DNA of 62,892 bases, from assembly GCF_000315625.1 (NCBI RefSeq), contig NW_005434633.1:392310-455201 (forward strand). Reading direction: 5' to 3'. This DNA is from Guillardia theta CCMP2712 (taxonomy: Eukaryota; Protista; Cryptophyta). A program made the translations under genes and the position numbers. Below the pieces are notes generated by a model. It was not told the DNA's origin. It did not search any database and saw only the letters and a program-made list of their open reading frames with translations. Below are positions 1-18,292 of this stretch, one piece after another; position 1 is the stretch's first letter, and every line of letters begins with the position of its first letter.

Positions 1-2259
1 CACTCGTCGGCTCCAGTCGGAAAGTCGCAGCATGCAGCCAGGAGGCTCTAGAGGTGGTCAGGGTGATCAGTAGCAGCGAGCCGCCGGTCACTCGCTCGAT
101 CGTGCCGAGCTCGCTGGCAGACATCGCAAGTCTGGCGGGAGGGTACGATGTGGTCGAGCATGCTCTTGGGACGCTGCTAGTTTCTCATGCCGTTGGTCGC
201 AGGTCCTGATCGGGGAGGTTCACGACGACCCCACGGCGCATGAGCTTGAGCTGGGGATCCTGCAAGAGTGCTTCCAGCGAATGAGGGCCAGTAGGAGCCT
301 GCACCTGTCACTGGAGATGTTTGAGACGGACGTCCAGGTGAGGAATGTTGTTGAGGCAGAGTAGGAGCGAGTGGTTGGGTGGGTGGGCGAGTGAGTGAGA
401 GCATGCGCAGAGGGTGATCGACGAGTACACGAGGGGCATCATCAGCGAGAGAGACATGATGGTAGACGGTAGAGCATGGATGAACTACCCGAGTGACTAC
501 AGGAAGATGGTAAATCTCTTGTCCACTCCTCCTCTACCTCCACCACCATCTCCCTCCTCCTGTCCTCCCTTTCTTCCTCTCTTCCTGTCCTCCCTCAGCT
601 TAATCCTCTCGATCGTGCACTTGCACTTCCTCATACTTATTTCCCTCCTCCTCCTCCTCCTCCTCCTCCTCCTCCTCCTCCCCACCCCCTCTCCTTTTGT
701 TCCTCCTCCTCCTCCTCCTCCTCCTCCTCCTCCTCATCCCAATCGGCTTCAACCCCGCATGCTTTCGTCGACTCCGTCCTGACGTCCCTTGTCCTCCTTT
801 CTTCCCTATCCTCGTGACAGGTGGAGTTTGCCAAAGAGCATGGTATCCCCGTGATTGCTGCTAACGCACCGAGAAGGTTTTACGAGCAATCTGACTTCCT
901 TTCATCCCTCATTCTCGCCTTCAGGTACATCTCAGTGGTTGGCAATCGAGGCATGTCCAGCCTTGACCAACTCTCCTCCTCCTCACGCTCGTTCCTTCCT
1001 CCTCTCCCAGTGCCCCCGGCTTCTGGACCATACCAGCTCAAGTTCACCCAGCAGATGCAGTTGATGCAGCAAGAGGTAGCTGCTGAGGGCAAACGAAACA
1101 GTGAAGGAAAATCTTCCTCCACGTCCTCTCTCTCTCGGCAAGACAAGGGGGCCCAGGGGCAGGCGGCAGGGGAGGAAGGAGCTGCATGCCCGTACATCGG
1201 GTGGAGCGCGGAGCGGAGCCGATTCATGCTGGAAGCTCAGGTTCAAATGCAAACTCCTGCTCCTGCTCTTGCTCCTGCCCCTGATGCCTGCTCCTGCTCC
1301 TGCTCCTGCTCCTGCTGCTCCTACTCCTCATGCCGTGTTGAACTGCCTGAGCAGAACCTTTGGGACGCGACCATGGCACACAGCATCGCGCAGATCTTGA
1401 ATGGGGGGGGCGATCTGAGTGGTGGTGGTGGTGGTGGAGGAGGAGGAGGGGAAAAGCTCACCAGAGGCGGCGTGAAGGATGGGAAGGCTCCCCTTGTGAT
1501 TCATGTCACTGGGAAGTTTCACTGTGAGGAGCGTTTGGGAATTCCCGAACACGTGGGTTTATCTCCCTGGTCTTTCACCTCCTCTCGTTCCTTCTCTATC
1601 ACCCTTAGCAGAAACGTCCTCTCCTCTGGTTTCTCTTTTACTCCCTCCTTCCTCATCCTTCCTGTTTCATTCCCTCCTCCTGCTCCTCCTCCTGCTCCTC
1701 CTACTGCTCCTCCTACTGCTCCTCCTACTGCTCCTCCTCCTGCTCCTCCTCCTGCTCTTCCTCCCCTTCTCACTGACAATTTCCATGGTGGCTGCAGCTG
1801 CACCGATATGCTCCGCATGCCAAGGTCATGGTAGTCGGTGAGACTTAGAGGAATGCTCATCGGCTGGTACGCTGACCTTGCGTGCAGTCTGTGCAGGGGA
1901 GGACGAGCTCAGCTTTATGAATGAGGCGATGGTACGTCAAACTCCTGTCCTGCTTCTCTTCCCCAGCAGCAGCAGCAGCTGCTGCTGCTGCTGCTACTGC
2001 TCCCATCACCATCACCACTTCCTGTTACCTCTGCCCCTGCTCATCCTCTTATCAAAACTCACTCTCGCTTCACTTCTCGTTGTCACGCCCCGCTGCTTCT
2101 CCCAGCTATCGATCCAGCTCTCCTCCCCCCTCCCTGTTCCTCTTCAGCTGATCTCACTCTCGTGGGCCCACCTCGGCGCCGCAGGTCTCGCAGCTCGGAG
2201 ACTTCGTGGTGATCTCTAGGAACAAGGAGAGGAGCTTTGAGGGCAAGCATCCCGTGTAG
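1..2259 (+). CDS. ChaN-like (haem-binding uptake/Tiki superfamily) protein, multi-exon, 5' partial
   Basis: Spliced motifs LSLEMFETDVQ, IDEYTRG, WMNYPSDYRKMVEFAKEHGIPVIAANAPRR, QNLWDATMAHSI, VIHVTGKFH and C-terminal LGDFVV; stop at 2257-2259. Confidence 0.8.
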
Positions 2260-2413
2260 CTTCAGTCTTGTCCTACCACCCCTCCAACTTTTTTCCTTCA
2301 TTACTTCGTCATATATACAGCCCTCTCTTCCTCTTCCAACTTCGTTTCCAGTCGGAGTTTCCCTTTCCGCCTTCGTCAAGCGCATGTCTCCTTCCTGTCG
2401 CTGGCTTCATCTC

Positions 2414-4244
2414 CTAGTCTCTGTCCATGTAATCCTGCTTCTCTTGCTCTGCGTGTGTTTCCTGCTCCTGCTCCTCCTCCAACGCCCCTTGCAAGAATCG
2501 AGGGTCCGGCCTTGGGTTCCCCATCCAAGAATCGACCTCTTCCCAATTCCCTGGCTTCGTGAGCCAGCGGAACGTCTGCGGTTTTCTCTTCAGCTTCTCG
2601 TCATAAGTCCAGGCCTGCACATGTCAAAGTCAGACTGGAGCCGCGAACTCAACGCTTCCTTCACACAAGGACGAACAATCCCACTGCTCCTTCCACGTCG
2701 CCCTCCCTCCTCCTCCCTTCTCCCTCTCCTCACGTCCTCCCTCCCCTCCTACTGACCTGATCCCCCGGTGACCACTTGGTGGCAATTCCACGATTTCTCC
2801 TCCCAGGAGGAGCCAGTGGAGCGTACACGCTCACCTGGTACGCGTTCGTCGAGCCCTCAGGCGCAGCGTATGCTTCTCCCTGGTAGATCTCTGGCACTTG
2901 CTGAGCTGCGATAGGCTTGCCTTTGGCGAAAGCTTGACCCCAGTCTCTGTGCCCGAGATCCACTTGTGCTGATCCTGCCTCCTCCTCCTGGCCAGTGCTT
3001 GCAGCGACGGGAGGAGAAACGGCTTGGGGAGGAGGTGCGGGTGCGGGTGCAGGTGCGGGTGCGGGTGCGGGTGCGGGTGCGGGTGCGGGTGCGGGTGCGG
3101 GTGCGGGGGCAGGAGGGAGAAGAGGAGGAGGAGGAGGAGGAGGAGGACGAGGAGGAGGAGGTGGTGGTGGTGGTGGAGGAGCAGCAGCAGCAGCAGGTGA
3201 TGGAGGTGGTGGCGGTGGCGAGACAGGAGGAGGGGGTGGAGGAGTTGGAGGAGACGAGTTGGTGTTGGCGGCAGCATCCGTAGCATTCTGTTCTGCGACT
3301 GCCGTCTGGACTGCATTCTGCACCGCCGATGTCACCGCCGACGCCACCGCATCAGCCAGGCTGCCTGCCAATTCCATCCTCCTCCCCGCTTCCTTCAACC
3401 TCCTCCTTCCCGCCGGAAGTTTCCCCCTTGCACTCAAGGACGGTGCCACTGCTTGCTCTCTCGCCATGTAGCGAGTCTGAAGCCTTCGGAGCGCCTCCTG
3501 CTTCACAATGCTGGTGCCCGCCTGCTGCCGCAGCCTGCTGGACGCCAGAGATTGTCTCCTGCTCTCCTGTTTCGCTTCTGCTGGGGCTGGCAAGGTGAAC
3601 TCGAAAGTATCGCCGGTCGTCATCCCTTGTGGGATCCTCACCATGAAACCTCCTCGCCCTGGCACGTTCACCAGCAGGTCTTGACCTCCATGGTATCCCA
3701 CAGGAACCCGAACCTGGAAAGCCCCAGTCCCAGGTGTAAAACTCTCGTGCTGTTCCTGCTGCTGCTGCATCTGCATCTGCTGTTGCTGCATCTGCATCTG
3801 CTGCTGTTGTTGCTGCTGCATGAAAGTCTGGACAGGAAGGTCGTCACGACCTTGCGCTCCGGTTGGGATCGTCACTCTCAAGTAACCACCCTGCTGGCTA
3901 GCAGGTGCGCGAGCTTCGAAGTAACCCCTACCAGGAACGAGGAACTCGAAGCTTTCCCCAACTCTCAATCCTTGTGGAACTCTTATAAGAAAGGTCTGTC
4001 CAGTAGAGGCTAGGGAGACCCCTCGGCTCCCTGTCAAGTTGAGCCTCCATGACACAAGGGCAAGAGCAAAAGCAAGCGCAAGAAATGGAAGAGAGTGCGC
4101 GAGAAGGCTGCGATATCTGCTTGAACGTTGGGGGACAGCATGTAGTTCGGATCTTGAAAACGCGTTCATCCTTGTCCTCCCTTCCTCAGTCTCTCCTCCC
4201 TCCCCTCCATCTTCCTCCCCCCTTCTCTCCGCCGCGTTCGCCAT
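2414..4244 (-). CDS. Hypothetical membrane-anchored protein with two VRVPxG..G..F repeats and a Pro/Ala-rich linker
   Basis: Long ORF 2730-4280 with one N-terminal hydrophobic helix, plus a 3' exon at 2414-2620. Confidence 0.55.
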
Positions 4245-13051: not shown

Positions 13052-14246
13052 ATGGACGATTCAGATCTCTCCCACTTGCGATTCCGTTTGAGAGAAAATG
13101 ATGAGGAGGCATGGGAGGAGATGAATTCTTTCCTTCCTGATGTACTTGTAGTGATACTGAAACTTTCTCTTCCTCGTCCTCTGCGTTTGCAGGTCTTCAC
13201 TGTTTTGGCTCTTTTGGTCCTGGCTGTTGTCCTGGCGATGGTGCCTGTCCCTCATTTCTCTCAGCTCCCTCCTGAAGGTGAAGATTTTGACTGACACGGA
13301 AAGAGGAAGGAGATGAGGAGAAGGAGGGAGTGAGGGAGAAGGAGGAGGGAGGGAGGGAGGGAGGGGAAGGGGAGAAGAAGGGAGAGGCGGACAGAGGGAC
13401 GGATGGCGGGATAGGGAGGGAAGGGGGGAGTGGAAAAATCAGCGAGAGGAGGAGGAGAAGGGAAGGTAGAGCAGGAGAGCAGGACACGGGAGTAGAGAGA
13501 GAGGTTTCAAGGAAGGAAGGAGGGGTTGACGAGGAAGGAAGGAGGGGTTGACGAGGAGGAAGGAAGGAGGGGTTGACGAGGAGGGAGGAAGGGAGGGGAG
13601 GGGAGGGGAGGGGAGGGGAGGGGAGGGTGGGTGGGTGGGTGGGTGGATGTTTGTTTTCATCGAGAAGAGATCGGAGTGGAGAAGGCTTTTGAAATAACCT
13701 GCAGACCCATCTTCCATACCTTGGCTCCCTACGGAGAAACTGCATACAGAAATCCTGACGAAGAAATCGGTAGGATGTTTGTCCGTTGGAAAACATCAAC
13801 ATGCGTTTGTATTTTGCTCTTCCTATTTCCCCTTTCTGTCCCCTGCCTTCCCTTTCCTTCCTCGTGATCTTCTCCTCTCCTCTCCTCTCCTCTCCTCTCC
13901 TCTCCTCTCCTCTCCTCTCCTCTCCTCTCCTCTCCTCTATCCATTCCTTCCCTTCCTCCTTCCCTCCTTGTCCTCCTCCTCTCCCCTCCATTCATCCTCC
14001 TCTCCCCCCCCCCTCCTCCTTTTCCTACAGTTCTCAGTTCTCGTTTTGCCTTTCATGTTTATTTCTCTTCACAACTCTTCATCCTCTCACTTGTCCTGCA
14101 GCCGCACCACGGCAGTGAGAAAACTCCGGAAGGGCATGACGCGCAATCGTTTCTTTATTTCTGATTGCAGCGCAATGACGGAGCCGATGACAGACGAGAT
14201 CTTGTACAAAGTGGGTGAGGGTGCAAACAAGAAACGAAAGTTGTAG
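13052..14246 (+). CDS. Hypothetical multi-exon protein
   Basis: Non-repetitive exons (13052-13280, ~13665-13770, 14102-14246) bounded by GT/AG and separated by simple-repeat introns. Confidence 0.4.
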
Positions 14247-14323
14247 ATCGAAGTGACTGCTTGCTCTTGCTGTTTTCCTTCTCCGTTCAGCAACAACCTC
14301 CTTCTCCTCCTCCTCCTCTCCCT

Positions 14324-14423
14324 NNNNNNNNNNNNNNNNNNNNNNNNNNNNNNNNNNNNNNNNNNNNNNNNNNNNNNNNNNNNNNNNNNNNNNNNNNNNN
14401 NNNNNNNNNNNNNNNNNNNNNNN
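14324..14423. other. Assembly gap (100 N)
   Basis: Run of N. Confidence 1.
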
Positions 14424-16171
14424 AGGAGAGGGCCCTACGTCTCTCTCCTCCTCATCGAAGACCTCGCAGTTGTCCTCCCTCCTAATACACTGGACTGACT
14501 GGTCCACCCGCACCGCTACGACTGCCTTGCATCTCGCCGTCTTCCTCTCCTTAGAGAAGTAGTCCCCCGCGGCCCCTGACCTCCACCTCCTGATTCTCTC
14601 TGTCGTCGGCTCGATGTCGTAGTTGTACACTTGGTACTCCACCACGGTGAAGGCAGGACGGTACTCCGGCAGGCTCCTCCTGATCATGAGGTCCACTGAC
14701 GCCTCCGCCCCTTCGAACGTGTAGCCCTTCCTCTCGAGCTCCTTCACTGACTTGAGGATCTCTCCGCTCCTCTGCTTCCAATCCTCATCCTTGCCCTGCC
14801 TCTCTCCGCTCTTCAGCGCTCCTCCCTGCTGCCCGAGCATCCCGAACTCCTCAACCTTGCTCATGATATTCCCCCTCCCCGACAGCTCACTGATCAGCAC
14901 CCTCCTCTGGTTCCCGACCAGCGTCGGGTCGATGTGTTGGTATGAGTCTTCGTTCTTCAGCACAGCGGCAACGTGGATGCCTCCCTTGTGGGCGAAGGCC
15001 GAGTTCCCGACGAAGGGCTGGTTCGATCGGTGAGGAAGATTCATCTGCTCGTTCACGGTCCTCGACAGCCTCGTCAGCGTCCTCAGCGCCTGTCCCTCGA
15101 CCAGCTCCAGCTTCATTTTCAGCTGCAGCACAGGGATCACCGTAGTGAGGTCCGTTGTCCCATCCAGCCCGTTCACCGTGCCTGTCACCAGCTCCATCCC
15201 CTCCTTGGCCGCGTACAGGGCGCTTGCTGCCGCGAGCTCCAAGTTGTCACTGCAAGAGACTCCCAGCCACGTCCCGTGCTCCTGCGTTCGCTTCCTCTGA
15301 AGCATCTCCTTTGCCATGGCCGAGATCTCCCATGGCGTTCCGATCCCTCCGCTGTCCACCACCACCAGGGCATCGGCTCCTGCCTCCTGCAGCGTCGACA
15401 TGATCTCTAGCAAAGCGCTGCTGTCTTGCCTCCAGGCATCGAACCCGTTGTGAAGGTGCACGAAGGTCTTGAGTTTGCCTTCAGCCGTCCTCTCCCACTC
15501 CTTTATGATCTTGATCTGACCAACAAGGCGGGCGAGGCAACCCTTGCTGACCCACTCCCCGTCAGCTCCCAGAACTGTAAACGCCAGCCCGAAATTCCGG
15601 ACGTTGAGAGCTAACGAGTCTCTTGCTCGCTCGCGATCCTCCTCCTCCCTCCCTCCCTCTGCGAACGGCAGCATGGCAACAAGCTTGTGGAAGCATGAAG
15701 GCGACAGCTCTTGCCTCGCACGCTTGAAAAACGCCTCGTCCACCGTGTCCACCGACGGCCATCCGCCTTCGATGAAGTGCATGCCGAAGGTGCTGAGCAT
15801 GTCAGCGAGTTTCAGTTTGTCTTCCGTGTTCCTGCACGCCATGAAAGAATGCATCAGTGCTCGATCATACATCAACAGCATGCGCACCACTCAGCGTTTC
15901 GTTGCGAAAGCGTCGAGTCGTAGAGGAAGACGTCGCGTTTTGCTGACATGCTTGTTGCAAGTCCTTTCCTTGCATGCTGTCGAATCTTGATAGGATCGGA
16001 AACTTGCAACCTTGTTCTCGGCCATGCCAGCACGCCCCTGCTCGACTGCATGTGACGAACATGAAGCATGTTCGACCTGTATGGACAGAGAATCTGAGGA
16101 CACCATCCGTAAACCGGAGCCAGGCACATGACAAGAAGGGAAAACTGCTGCATGGCGCGTTTTGGGGCCAT
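14424..16171 (-). CDS. Citramalate synthase (CimA)/isopropylmalate synthase family protein with a degenerate active site; probably plastid-targeted; 3' end lost in the gap
   Basis: EDKL..IEGGWP, PFVGNSAFAHKGGIHV, YQHIDPTLVGNQRRVLISELSG, GYTFEGAEAS; N-terminal signal peptide plus transit-like segment; intron ~15834-15889. Confidence 0.85.
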
Positions 16172-16616
16172 GTTCGATGCACCTGACCCTCAATCTCTCC
16201 TTCCCTTCCTCGCTCCTCTTTGACACAGCCCCGCCCCTGTCCTCTTGCAAGCTCTTCGGGGACAATTCGGTCAGCCGCGCCGAACACCTGTTCTGCAGGA
16301 TCAGGAAAAAATGTCCATCGATGTCTTCATGACGACATCCTTTTCTCTGTCGTCCCCCCCCCGCCCCCGCCCCCTTTTTTCCTGATCCTGCCTCCCTCAA
16401 AATAACCTTTCCTCCCCTCTGTTTCCTTTTGCGGTTCCTTTCTCCTTCCCTGTATCCATCAGACGATTTTCTACATCCTCACTAGAGCACGCGACATCTG
16501 ACCATTGAGAAATTCAAATTTCTCCTCTCCTCCTTAATCATTGACACTGGTGTGACTTCAAGTCTTCGTGTTCATCGCTCCAGCTTCTGCCCCGCCCCTC
16601 CTAAACCCTAAACCCT

Positions 16617-16784
16617 TCTGCTCCTGCCCCTGCCCCTGCCCCTGCCCCTGCCCCTGCCCCTGCCCCTGCCCCTGCCCCTGCCCCTGCCCCTGCCCCTGCC
16701 CCTGCCCCTGCCCCTGCCCCTGCCCCTGCTCCTGCTCCTGCCCCTGCTCCTGCTCCTGCCCCTGCCCCTGCTCCTGCTCCTGCC

Positions 16785-16829
<45 letters not shown>

Positions 16830-16830
16830 C
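16617..16830 (+). repeat. (CCCCTG)n/(CTCCTG)n hexamer array
   Basis: Seen directly. Confidence 0.95.
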
Positions 16831-17254
16831 CCCAATTCCGCATGCGGCGTATTGACCAGATGATTTCCCCGCTTATTCAATTCCAACATAGAATAAAATT
16901 ACACAGAACATTTTGAAATTATGATATATGACTCATTCTGATTTGAAATTTCCATGGACGCTCATGCACTGCAAGAGACGCAACGTGGGAACGTGTGGAT
17001 TGAGAGAGGAGGAGGAGGAGGAGGAGGAGGAGGAGGAGGAGGAGGAGGAGGAGGAGGAGGACAAAGGGTCTGAGATCAGGGAGGGATGGAGGAGAGTGCA
17101 TGCGAAGATGGGAGAGACTAAGATGATTTGAGGATGAATCCTTGCAGTCATGGAACCGGTGCTCCTCCTCTACCATTGCGGATCACAACTGCATTGCCAT
17201 CAACCAAGCTGCATGCGTCGTTCTGTTGATGCCGTAGCCTCGTGAACCTGCGCC

Positions 17255-18292
17255 ATGACTCGTAGGGTCATGTTGCTCGCGTCTATCTTGGTCTTCTCGC
17301 TAAAGGCTGAATCCTTTATCGCAAAACACGGGGATTTTCGCAACGACAGGCGCAAAATGCTGGATAGTCCTCGTATCCTTCCTGTCTCCTACGTCCAGAG
17401 AATGTCGGGAGGAGCTGCTCACCCATGGGAGAAAACTCGCATGGTCCCGGACTATTACGCCATGCTCGGAGTCAAACAAGATGCGAATCAGGAAAGCATT
17501 AAAAAGGCTTACAAGAAGCTCGTGTTAAGGTATCATCCTGACAAGAACACCAAGAACCAGAACGCGAAAGAAATGTTCATCAGGGTGCAGGTACGCTGTG
17601 TCTGCTCTGCTCCGCATGGTTCTTAGACGCCGTCCAGGAAGCGTACTCGGTCCTCTCGGACCCGAAGCTGAAGATCGAGTACGACGAGGCCAAGTTGGGT
17701 AGCAAAGTATCGTCGATGTTCCAAGACAACATCTTCCAGCGTCAGGGCGCTGCCAGTCCTGGGCATCAGACACCAAATGTCCCTCTCAACAAGCAGAGCG
17801 CGTGGGCTCGGCAGCGAACTCAGGAGGCCAAGTGGGAGTTCGGGGGTTCTTATGCCGACATGAGGGCAAAACAGATTCTGAGGTGCGAGTGGAAACCTGA
17901 CGTGTGTTGAGAATTCTTCTTGATACTGAAGTTTGTTGGGCCTTGCTGAATTCTTCTTCGTACCGATGATCCCAAACGTGTTTGAGAGTGTGGAGAATTC
18001 TTGAAAACGCTCATGTGTATTGTGTGAGAGAGATTGTTCCTCTGTACTGTTGTTCGCATTTCCCGTGATCAAAGTCTGGCAGGCGGCAGGAGAAGATTCG
18101 GGCAGAGGCAGCAGCTCGTGCGCGTCAGGCTTTGAACTCGCAGTGGAAGGAGAAGAACGGACCTGAGCCAGAAACTACCGACGATCAAAAAGCTCGACCC
18201 CCCCCATCCAAGGGAAGATCTTTTTTTTTCAAGGTTTGCCGCCTTGCGATCTTCCATGCCCCTGATAGCGGCATTTGCGCAGGACAAGATGA
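17255..18292 (+). CDS. DnaJ/J-domain protein with signal peptide (3' end approximate)
   Basis: DYYAMLGV...[17 protein letters not shown]...VQ|EAYSVLSD; hydrophobic N-terminus ending AES-F, typical of bipartite plastid targeting. Confidence 0.85.

Follow-up and report, generated by a model that had tools for sequence, protein, structure and literature searches.

We analysed a 62,892-nt stretch of the Guillardia theta CCMP2712 genome (C41:392310-455201, contig NW_005434633.1; hereafter the window), and found a gene of the citramalate synthase (CimA) family that starts at position 16171 on its minus strand. To judge from its residues, the TIM-barrel active site of this gene product, named beta here, is dead, and beta cannot be a stand-alone synthase. 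A paralogue on contig C6, GUITHDRAFT_64472 (named alpha here), has suffered the reciprocal loss, and these residue and domain losses of alpha and beta are conserved across cryptophytes. Since the losses are complementary and the dimer of this family is domain-swapped, we propose an alpha/beta heterodimer; reading the sequences and predicted structures together, we regard it as probably an obligate one with a single composite active site. Genome-wide scans were made on the G. theta assembly (87.1 Mb, 669 contigs).

Loss of the catalytic barrel motifs in beta

The motifs of beta were read directly, in an alignment with 59 relatives, and in a second alignment of 45 sequences (33 canonical CimAs and 12 beta sequences). 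All positions below are on the minus strand. The substrate/metal motif YDTTLRDGxQ has become YDSTLSQRN (YDSTLSQRNAEW, 15896..15922, in exon 1), with loss of the Arg and of the metal-binding Asp. DAEHFFDG is replaced by HLHNGFDA at 15435..15458 (alignment columns 125-132), and the change of the catalytic Glu to His is invariant in the beta clade. LCDTNG has become VVDSGG (15345..15362), losing its T and N, and GIHCHND has become GVSCSDN (15243..15263), losing both metal-binding His residues. At 15147..15173, NGLDGTTDL stands for NGxGERxGNxxL, where a 3-residue deletion between NGLD and GTTDL removes the Glu-Arg pair.

The catalytic set of the DRE-TIM barrel (RDG Arg-Asp, AEH Glu, HxH and GERxGN) is replaced or deleted in beta and in every member of its clade. 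Each of the 33 unbroken CimAs in the alignment (red algae, ochrophytes, bacteria) keeps every motif, and the loss is found only in the 13-member beta clade. An earlier first-pass annotation, made from the letters alone, had reported the loss of the RDG, CDTNG, HxH and GER motifs, which both the direct reading and the alignments bear out; the loss of the catalytic Glu is an addition to it.

We found that exon 2 of beta matches the citramalate synthase model TIGR00977 at 252.8 bits (model positions 22-403; the genome scan gave 250.8), short of the curated cut-off of 450. Part of this shortfall arises because the C-terminus is missing in an assembly gap. The Pfam HMGL-like domain scored 50 bits on exon 2, and 50-71 bits when the orthologues of beta are included. 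The AlphaFold model of exon 2 has a per-residue confidence (pLDDT) above 90 in the barrel, and its best Foldseek matches are structures of MAM synthase, homocitrate synthase (HCS), isopropylmalate synthase (IPMS) and LiCMS. Related structures of these enzymes are LiCMS (3BLE/3BLI), IPMS (1SR9, 3RMJ, 4OV4), HCS (6KTQ, 3IVS) and MAM synthase (6E1J).

Canonical (R)-citramalate synthase CimA (TIGR00977; red algae, ochrophytes, Chloroflexota) has the same domain order as beta, namely the TIM barrel, accessory subdomains I and II, and the LeuA_dimer regulatory domain, the last of which is seen in the beta orthologues. Nearly all consensus columns of the CimA accessory and regulatory parts are matched by beta, whereas all barrel catalytic residues are absent and the score is 253 bits against the cut-off of 450.

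Conservation of the accessory linker and selection on beta

Accessory subdomain I (Pfam HCS_D2) is intact in beta at 14838..15011, with the same coordinates in Pfam and in the genome scan. It contains AFAHKGGIH, with the His codon at 14988-14990, and SYQHIDP, with the Tyr codon at 14940-14942. The conserved helix of accessory subdomain II, GYTFEGAEAS, was located by the alignments at 14697..14726. HCS_D2 scored 52.5 bits on beta (cut-off 27) and 56 bits in the genome scan, with AFxHKxGxH and Y-x-x-I/V-x-P both present, and the stretches AFAHKGGIHVAA, YQHIDPTLVGN and GYTFEGAEAS are canonical. The motif columns of subdomain I are invariant in 12/12 clade members and in the canonical enzymes.

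We took the columns conserved to 93% or more among the 33 canonical CimAs and found almost all of those from exon-2 residue 228 on kept in the 12 beta sequences, among them AFAHKGGIHV, YQHIDP..VGN..R, SELSGRGN and GYTFEGAEAS. Positions 393, 398 and 465 depart from this, as do three C-terminal columns at 71%. The near-canonical dimer-linker region described earlier (AFAHKGGIHV, YQHIDP..VGN, GYTFEGAEAS) is real, and its columns are as invariant as in true enzymes. The core of the regulatory domain is also kept in beta orthologues, and LeuA_dimer is present in P0003, P0005 and P0125; the G. theta gene shows only the start of this domain before a 100-N gap.

The beta clade has 13 sequences including the window gene, and the same substitutions occur in the 12 others, among which Hanusia phi and Baffinella frigidus are the named species. 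All 13 form a monophyletic group (SH-aLRT 100) whose stem is long and whose internal branches are deep. The other members are transcript-length contigs from metatranscriptomes and sequencing runs, several with untranslated flanks at both ends.

We compared selection between the domains by the Nei-Gojobori method on the unsaturated pair P0003 and P0006. The ratio of nonsynonymous to synonymous substitution rates (dN/dS) was lowest in the regulatory domain (0.03), intermediate in the linker (0.10) and highest in the barrel (0.20). Thus, the whole beta protein is under purifying selection, and the barrel is relaxed but not free. Neutral evolution, for which a comparison of dN/dS by domain had been suggested as a check, is not seen. 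The barrel is also the least conserved domain between G. theta beta and P0003 (40% identity, compared with 81% in the linker).

These values bear on the idea that beta has been neofunctionalised, and that its remodelled barrel catalyses or binds something new without the DRE-TIM metal site. Invariants specific to the clade (E to H127, H to N128, F to M53, T to G81, C to V158), a barrel dN/dS of about 0.2 and a barrel pLDDT above 90 are all in line with such a change. However, the barrel has lost its three metal ligands, the Arg that binds substrate and the GER loop, and nothing conserved takes the place of HxH. Moreover, the barrel is less conserved than any other domain, and the need for a fold and a dimer interface would explain its residual constraint. 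We consider a new barrel function unlikely.

Gene structure of beta

The start ATG at 16171 opens a 99-codon open reading frame (ORF) that ends in VFLYDSTLSQRNAEWCACC and a stop. A second ORF, in a different frame, extends from 15890 to 100 consecutive N at 14324..14423. We resolved these into two exons. Exon 1 (15888..16171, minus strand) encodes a signal-peptide-like and a transit-peptide-like leader, the first barrel strand and YDSTLSQRNAE(W); it had no Pfam match, as expected of a leader. Exon 2 (14424..15831, minus strand) has 469 codons; it continues the degenerate TIM barrel to its end and then encodes the intact accessory linker and the first part of the regulatory domain. It ends at the assembly gap, which is the expected place of the remaining LeuA_dimer domain that orthologues have. 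The predicted intron (15832..15887, minus strand) is 56 nt long, with GT at 15887-6 and AG at 15833-2, and it is indicated by the in-frame stop after exon 1 and by the orthologue match across the junction. The spliced junction reads ...SQRNAEW/NTEDKLKLA and the orthologues read ...TQRQAEF/SVEDKIKVA, of equal length and with no gap.

The closest proteins are from Hanusia phi (83% identity). The intron segment is poorly conserved between the two species, while both flanks are conserved. The H. phi transcript ORF P0002 runs through the segment equivalent to the intron in the wrong frame. When the last 13 codons of exon 1 were back-translated by hand, the differences between P0002 and G. theta fell at synonymous positions of the exon-1 frame. 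A second YD..L-like string in the intron frame (LLMYDRALMHSF) was aligned to orthologues by tblastn. We rejected it as coding, because this stretch is not conserved in Hanusia and the exon-1 frame is.

A single open frame over 14424-16171 is ruled out by the two ORFs in different frames, joined by the 56-nt intron. The statement of the first-pass annotation that the frame is open holds for each exon, and not for 16171-15888 and 15831-14424 together, which differ in frame with a stop after exon 1. Position 14424, given there as the end of the gene, is a mere edge of the gap at 14324-14423, in which the C-terminus is concealed. A search with the last 141 residues of the Baffinella orthologue gave no credible match in the window or in the whole G. 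theta assembly.

The existing gene model of beta, P0001 (413 residues), starts inside the intron and stops early, so that neither the leader nor the first motif is part of it. In the ORF list, the 100-N gap is read through as X residues, which yields a spurious 603-codon ORF at 14079-15890. A genomic beta orthologue (P0126/P0011) lies at 982-3199 of a JGI 3300050183 contig and is split into separately called ORFs, with its LeuA_dimer part called as a separate gene. In this copy a short segment, AINEQV, is duplicated, which points to an intron that may have been retained.

Two of these features, the frame break between exons 1 and 2 and the assembly gap at the 3' end, could be taken as signs of a decaying pseudogene or of an assembly or annotation artefact. 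But both exons are open, and 12 orthologues share the substitutions, several of them on transcript-length contigs with flanks; dN/dS is well below 1 in every domain. The frame break itself is resolved by a canonical short intron. Decay or artefact is extremely improbable as an account of beta.

Paralogues in G. theta and the reciprocal loss in alpha

Four loci of the CimA/LeuA family were found in the assembly, on C30, C155, C41 (beta) and C6 (alpha). Alpha (C6:575998-579858, minus strand) has all barrel motifs, and its accessory subdomain I is replaced. The segment AFAHKGGIH...YQHIDP was not found in any frame of the alpha locus, where the sequence reads AAYVGSMSFATQ. A six-frame scan of the whole assembly with HCS_D2 matched only C155, C30 and C41, with no match at the alpha locus.

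The same pattern is found in other cryptophytes. The relatives listed from the alpha search include the cryptophyte orthologues P0132 (H. phi), P0135 (Baffinella) and P0133-P0143, and all alpha orthologues are without Pfam HCS_D2, unlike every other CimA in that listing. The motifs YDTTLRDGAQ, DAEHF, LCDTNG, HCHND and GERTGN are kept in alphas P0131, P0132, P0134, P0135 and P0137-P0140. In place of subdomain I (AFAHKGGIHV...YQHIDP) stands a variable low-complexity sequence, such as AFKVELCFPGANPTNDVVEFRVRPATVGN. With hmmscan, alpha scored 142-159 bits for HMGL-like and had a LeuA_dimer match, but no HCS_D2 at E ≤ 1; for comparison, the scores of beta are 50-71 bits (HMGL-like) and 52-56 bits (HCS_D2). 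On Tara metagenome contigs, alpha P0139 is encoded by one ORF of 705 codons without interruption, which indicates that the degeneration of the linker is genomic and in frame, and not a splicing artefact. Alpha and beta genes co-occur in three named species, G. theta, H. phi and Baffinella; the environmental alpha and beta sequences came from different samples.

The public alpha model P0131 starts downstream of a signal-peptide-like leader that is present in the ORF. At the degenerate linker, P0131 also seems to be a translation of intron sequence (...ALLMSEAGPSKSGNIETGKQVLPEAVKKK...), and this gene model should be revised.

The other two loci are of different kinds. The CimA on C30 (C30:428328-432872, ORF 556-3048, 830 codons) has a long N-terminal extension with hydrophobic, membrane-like segments, and its C-terminal part is canonical, with 548 bits for TIGR00977, above the cut-off. 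Since it keeps all barrel and accessory motifs, has a very long branch in the tree and carries this extension, it is probably self-sufficient and located elsewhere. The locus on C155 (C155:82589-86683, ORF 1429-2670) is a bacterial-type LeuA (IPMS) with GHDDLG, GIGERAGN and AFAHESGIH intact, and the N-terminal half of its barrel must lie in upstream exons. The first-pass annotation had proposed a search for an intact CimA paralogue; paralogues with an intact barrel are present in the genome, as alpha on C6 and on C30.

The loss in alpha also bears on the possibility that beta acts by itself, as a non-catalytic protein such as a homodimeric amino-acid sensor or regulator that dimerises through LeuA_dimer and has no link to alpha. 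Its regulatory domain is the most constrained (dN/dS 0.03) and its catalytic residues are dead, as such a protein would have it. Yet this does not account for the invariance of the trans His and Tyr and of subdomain I in its entirety. It also gives no reason why the only plastid-type intact barrel of the genome lost exactly subdomain I, and a beta without alpha seems improbable to us.

Predicted pairing and a proposed split active site

In HCS and IPMS, the trans His forms a catalytic dyad with a Glu of the barrel. The IPMS dimer is domain-swapped: one chain contributes the accessory domain that caps its partner's active site (PMC9860122). Catalysis requires this accessory domain, whose subdomain I contains His379 and Tyr410 of MtuIPMS (PMC9860122).

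On this model, an alpha homodimer would be without the arm at both sites, and a beta homodimer would be without the chemistry in both barrels. An alpha/beta dimer would hold exactly one complete site, made of the alpha barrel and the His/Tyr linker of beta. The other half-site, formed by the beta barrel and the degenerate linker of alpha, would be permanently dead. The regulatory domains of alpha and beta would pair as in the homodimeric enzymes and provide feedback control. We infer from the reciprocal losses that alpha depends on beta for catalysis, and citramalate is the presumptive product, by homology to TIGR00977-type CimA.

The physical pairing of alpha and beta was modelled with alpha 15-321 and beta exon-2 residues 1-395 as input (beta residue numbers such as His281 and Tyr297 are in exon-2 numbering). 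The interface score ipSAE was 0.83 in three runs, and the best control had 0.00. The pLDDT of the partners was at least 72, and the agreement of contacts among runs was at least 78%. The mark set for this tool is reached by 51/78 solved complexes and by 2/108 mismatched pairs. In the model, residues 269-300 of beta, including His281 and Tyr297, contact the alpha loops 35-37, 128-135, 167/170, 200-206, 230-237 and 258-262. These loops lie after RDG, around AEH, CDTNG and HCHND, and at GERTG. The prediction of the heterodimer, named earlier as a check, passes its controls, and as a prediction it is consistent with the pairing of alpha and beta rather than proof of it.

A looser arrangement would make beta an optional regulatory subunit that tunes a self-sufficient alpha homodimer, as Leu9 does on Leu4 in yeast. 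Heterodimers of yeast IPMS paralogues with altered feedback sensitivity have been described (PMC7418496), and both alpha and beta carry LeuA_dimer domains. However, alpha lacks accessory subdomain I, which IPMS catalysis needs (PMC9860122), and an alpha homodimer should be severely impaired because of this absence. This arrangement is quite unlikely; a required half of the enzyme is a more probable role for beta than that of an accessory that only regulates. Taken together, the clade, the selection, the invariant linker, the paralogues, the loss in alpha and the predicted complex support the proposal of the first-pass annotation that beta is a subunit under selection, itself non-catalytic, in a heteromeric citramalate/isopropylmalate synthase, with a linker that completes the active site of its partner.

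Localisation and points against the proposed heterodimer

The leaders were read by eye only. The G. theta beta leader has a basic start, a hydrophobic core that ends in ...LAPVYG/W, and then a Ser/Arg-rich stretch (the slash marks the putative end of the signal peptide). Among beta leaders, ...VYG/W is found in G. theta and ...VDA/W in P0003 and P0006; the alpha leaders of four orthologues read ...ASA/F or ...AGA/F. Leaders of the ...A/F or .../W type are what stromal import signals in red-lineage complex plastids typically look like. The bipartite plastid-type leader noted earlier on beta does look bipartite, on a reading by eye.

Several observations weigh against an obligate heterodimer in the plastid. 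In the alpha leaders of G. theta and H. phi, no aromatic residue stands out behind the presumed signal peptide, and in Baffinella the beta leader is ...TQA/A. As the aromatic residue is not obvious in these leaders, co-localisation of alpha and beta in the plastid, as read from their N-termini, is likely but not secure. The position of alpha in the tree, beside beta or elsewhere, has no support. The sole Hanusia transcript keeps the intron. The pass of the complex prediction may reflect only the known homodimer of the family, as such a pass does not identify which family member binds. Finally, the beta barrel keeps the clade-specific invariants Met53, Gly81, Ala83, His127, Asn128 and Val158 at a dN/dS of 0.2, and because of these residues and this constraint the barrel may be more than a scaffold and have an additional role.

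With these points weighed, we still lean, by a narrow balance of probability, towards an obligate heterodimer, arisen by reciprocal degeneration across a domain-swapped site, as the producer of citramalate in cryptophyte plastids, where it would form the entry to the pyruvate-derived isoleucine route.

Comparison with known systems

The yeast IPMS paralogues Leu4 and Leu9 prefer to form heterodimers, which have altered properties (Lopez et al. 2015, as cited in PMC7418496). They resemble alpha and beta in being two paralogues of the superfamily that assemble together in one organelle, the alpha/beta pairing being a prediction. The difference is that both yeast subunits are complete and active, whereas alpha and beta each lack a complementary part of the shared site.

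The trypanosomatid prozymes are dead paralogues that act with deoxyhypusine synthase (PMC3663545) and with S-adenosylmethionine decarboxylase (AdoMetDC; PMC5201418). As these papers describe it, a selected dead paralogue and an impaired catalytic paralogue form a hetero-oligomer that is required for activity (PMC3663545, PMC5201418). Similarly, beta is catalytically dead and under purifying selection, and the co-occurring alpha is impaired in a complementary way. The systems differ in enzyme family, lineage and compartment, and the dependence of alpha on beta is predicted from a domain-swapped site that reciprocal loss has split. Partners of this dead-paralogue kind are known mainly from trypanosome enzymes of polyamine and hypusine synthesis. 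Our literature search found no dead-paralogue partner for the citramalate/isopropylmalate/homocitrate synthase family or for algal amino-acid synthesis, and an arrangement like that of alpha and beta is absent from the papers searched.

Homodimeric IPMS is asymmetric, with one site closed and one open. If the pairing of alpha and beta is true, it would be a genetic fixation of this asymmetry, and a natural system in which to ask if IPMS-type asymmetry is functionally required. It would also be an example from nature of complementary loss (constructive neutral evolution) within one active site, and one defined by sequence in which a domain-swapped homodimer became an obligate heterodimer. The pairing would further explain why one gene is annotated as a (truncated) "hypothetical protein" and the other as an "(R)-citramalate synthase" that would be inactive alone.

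Other features near beta

A long hexanucleotide microsatellite lies just upstream of beta at 16568-16889 of the window, and it would encode (Cys-Pro)n, (Gly-Ala)n or (Arg-Ser/Gly)n depending on the frame. Similar trinucleotide runs, coding Glu/Leu/Ser, are found at 16919-17176. On the plus strand, divergent from beta, an ORF at 17255-17626 has a signal-like leader and the start of a J-domain (YYAMLGV...), and is probably the first exon of a DnaJ-family gene.

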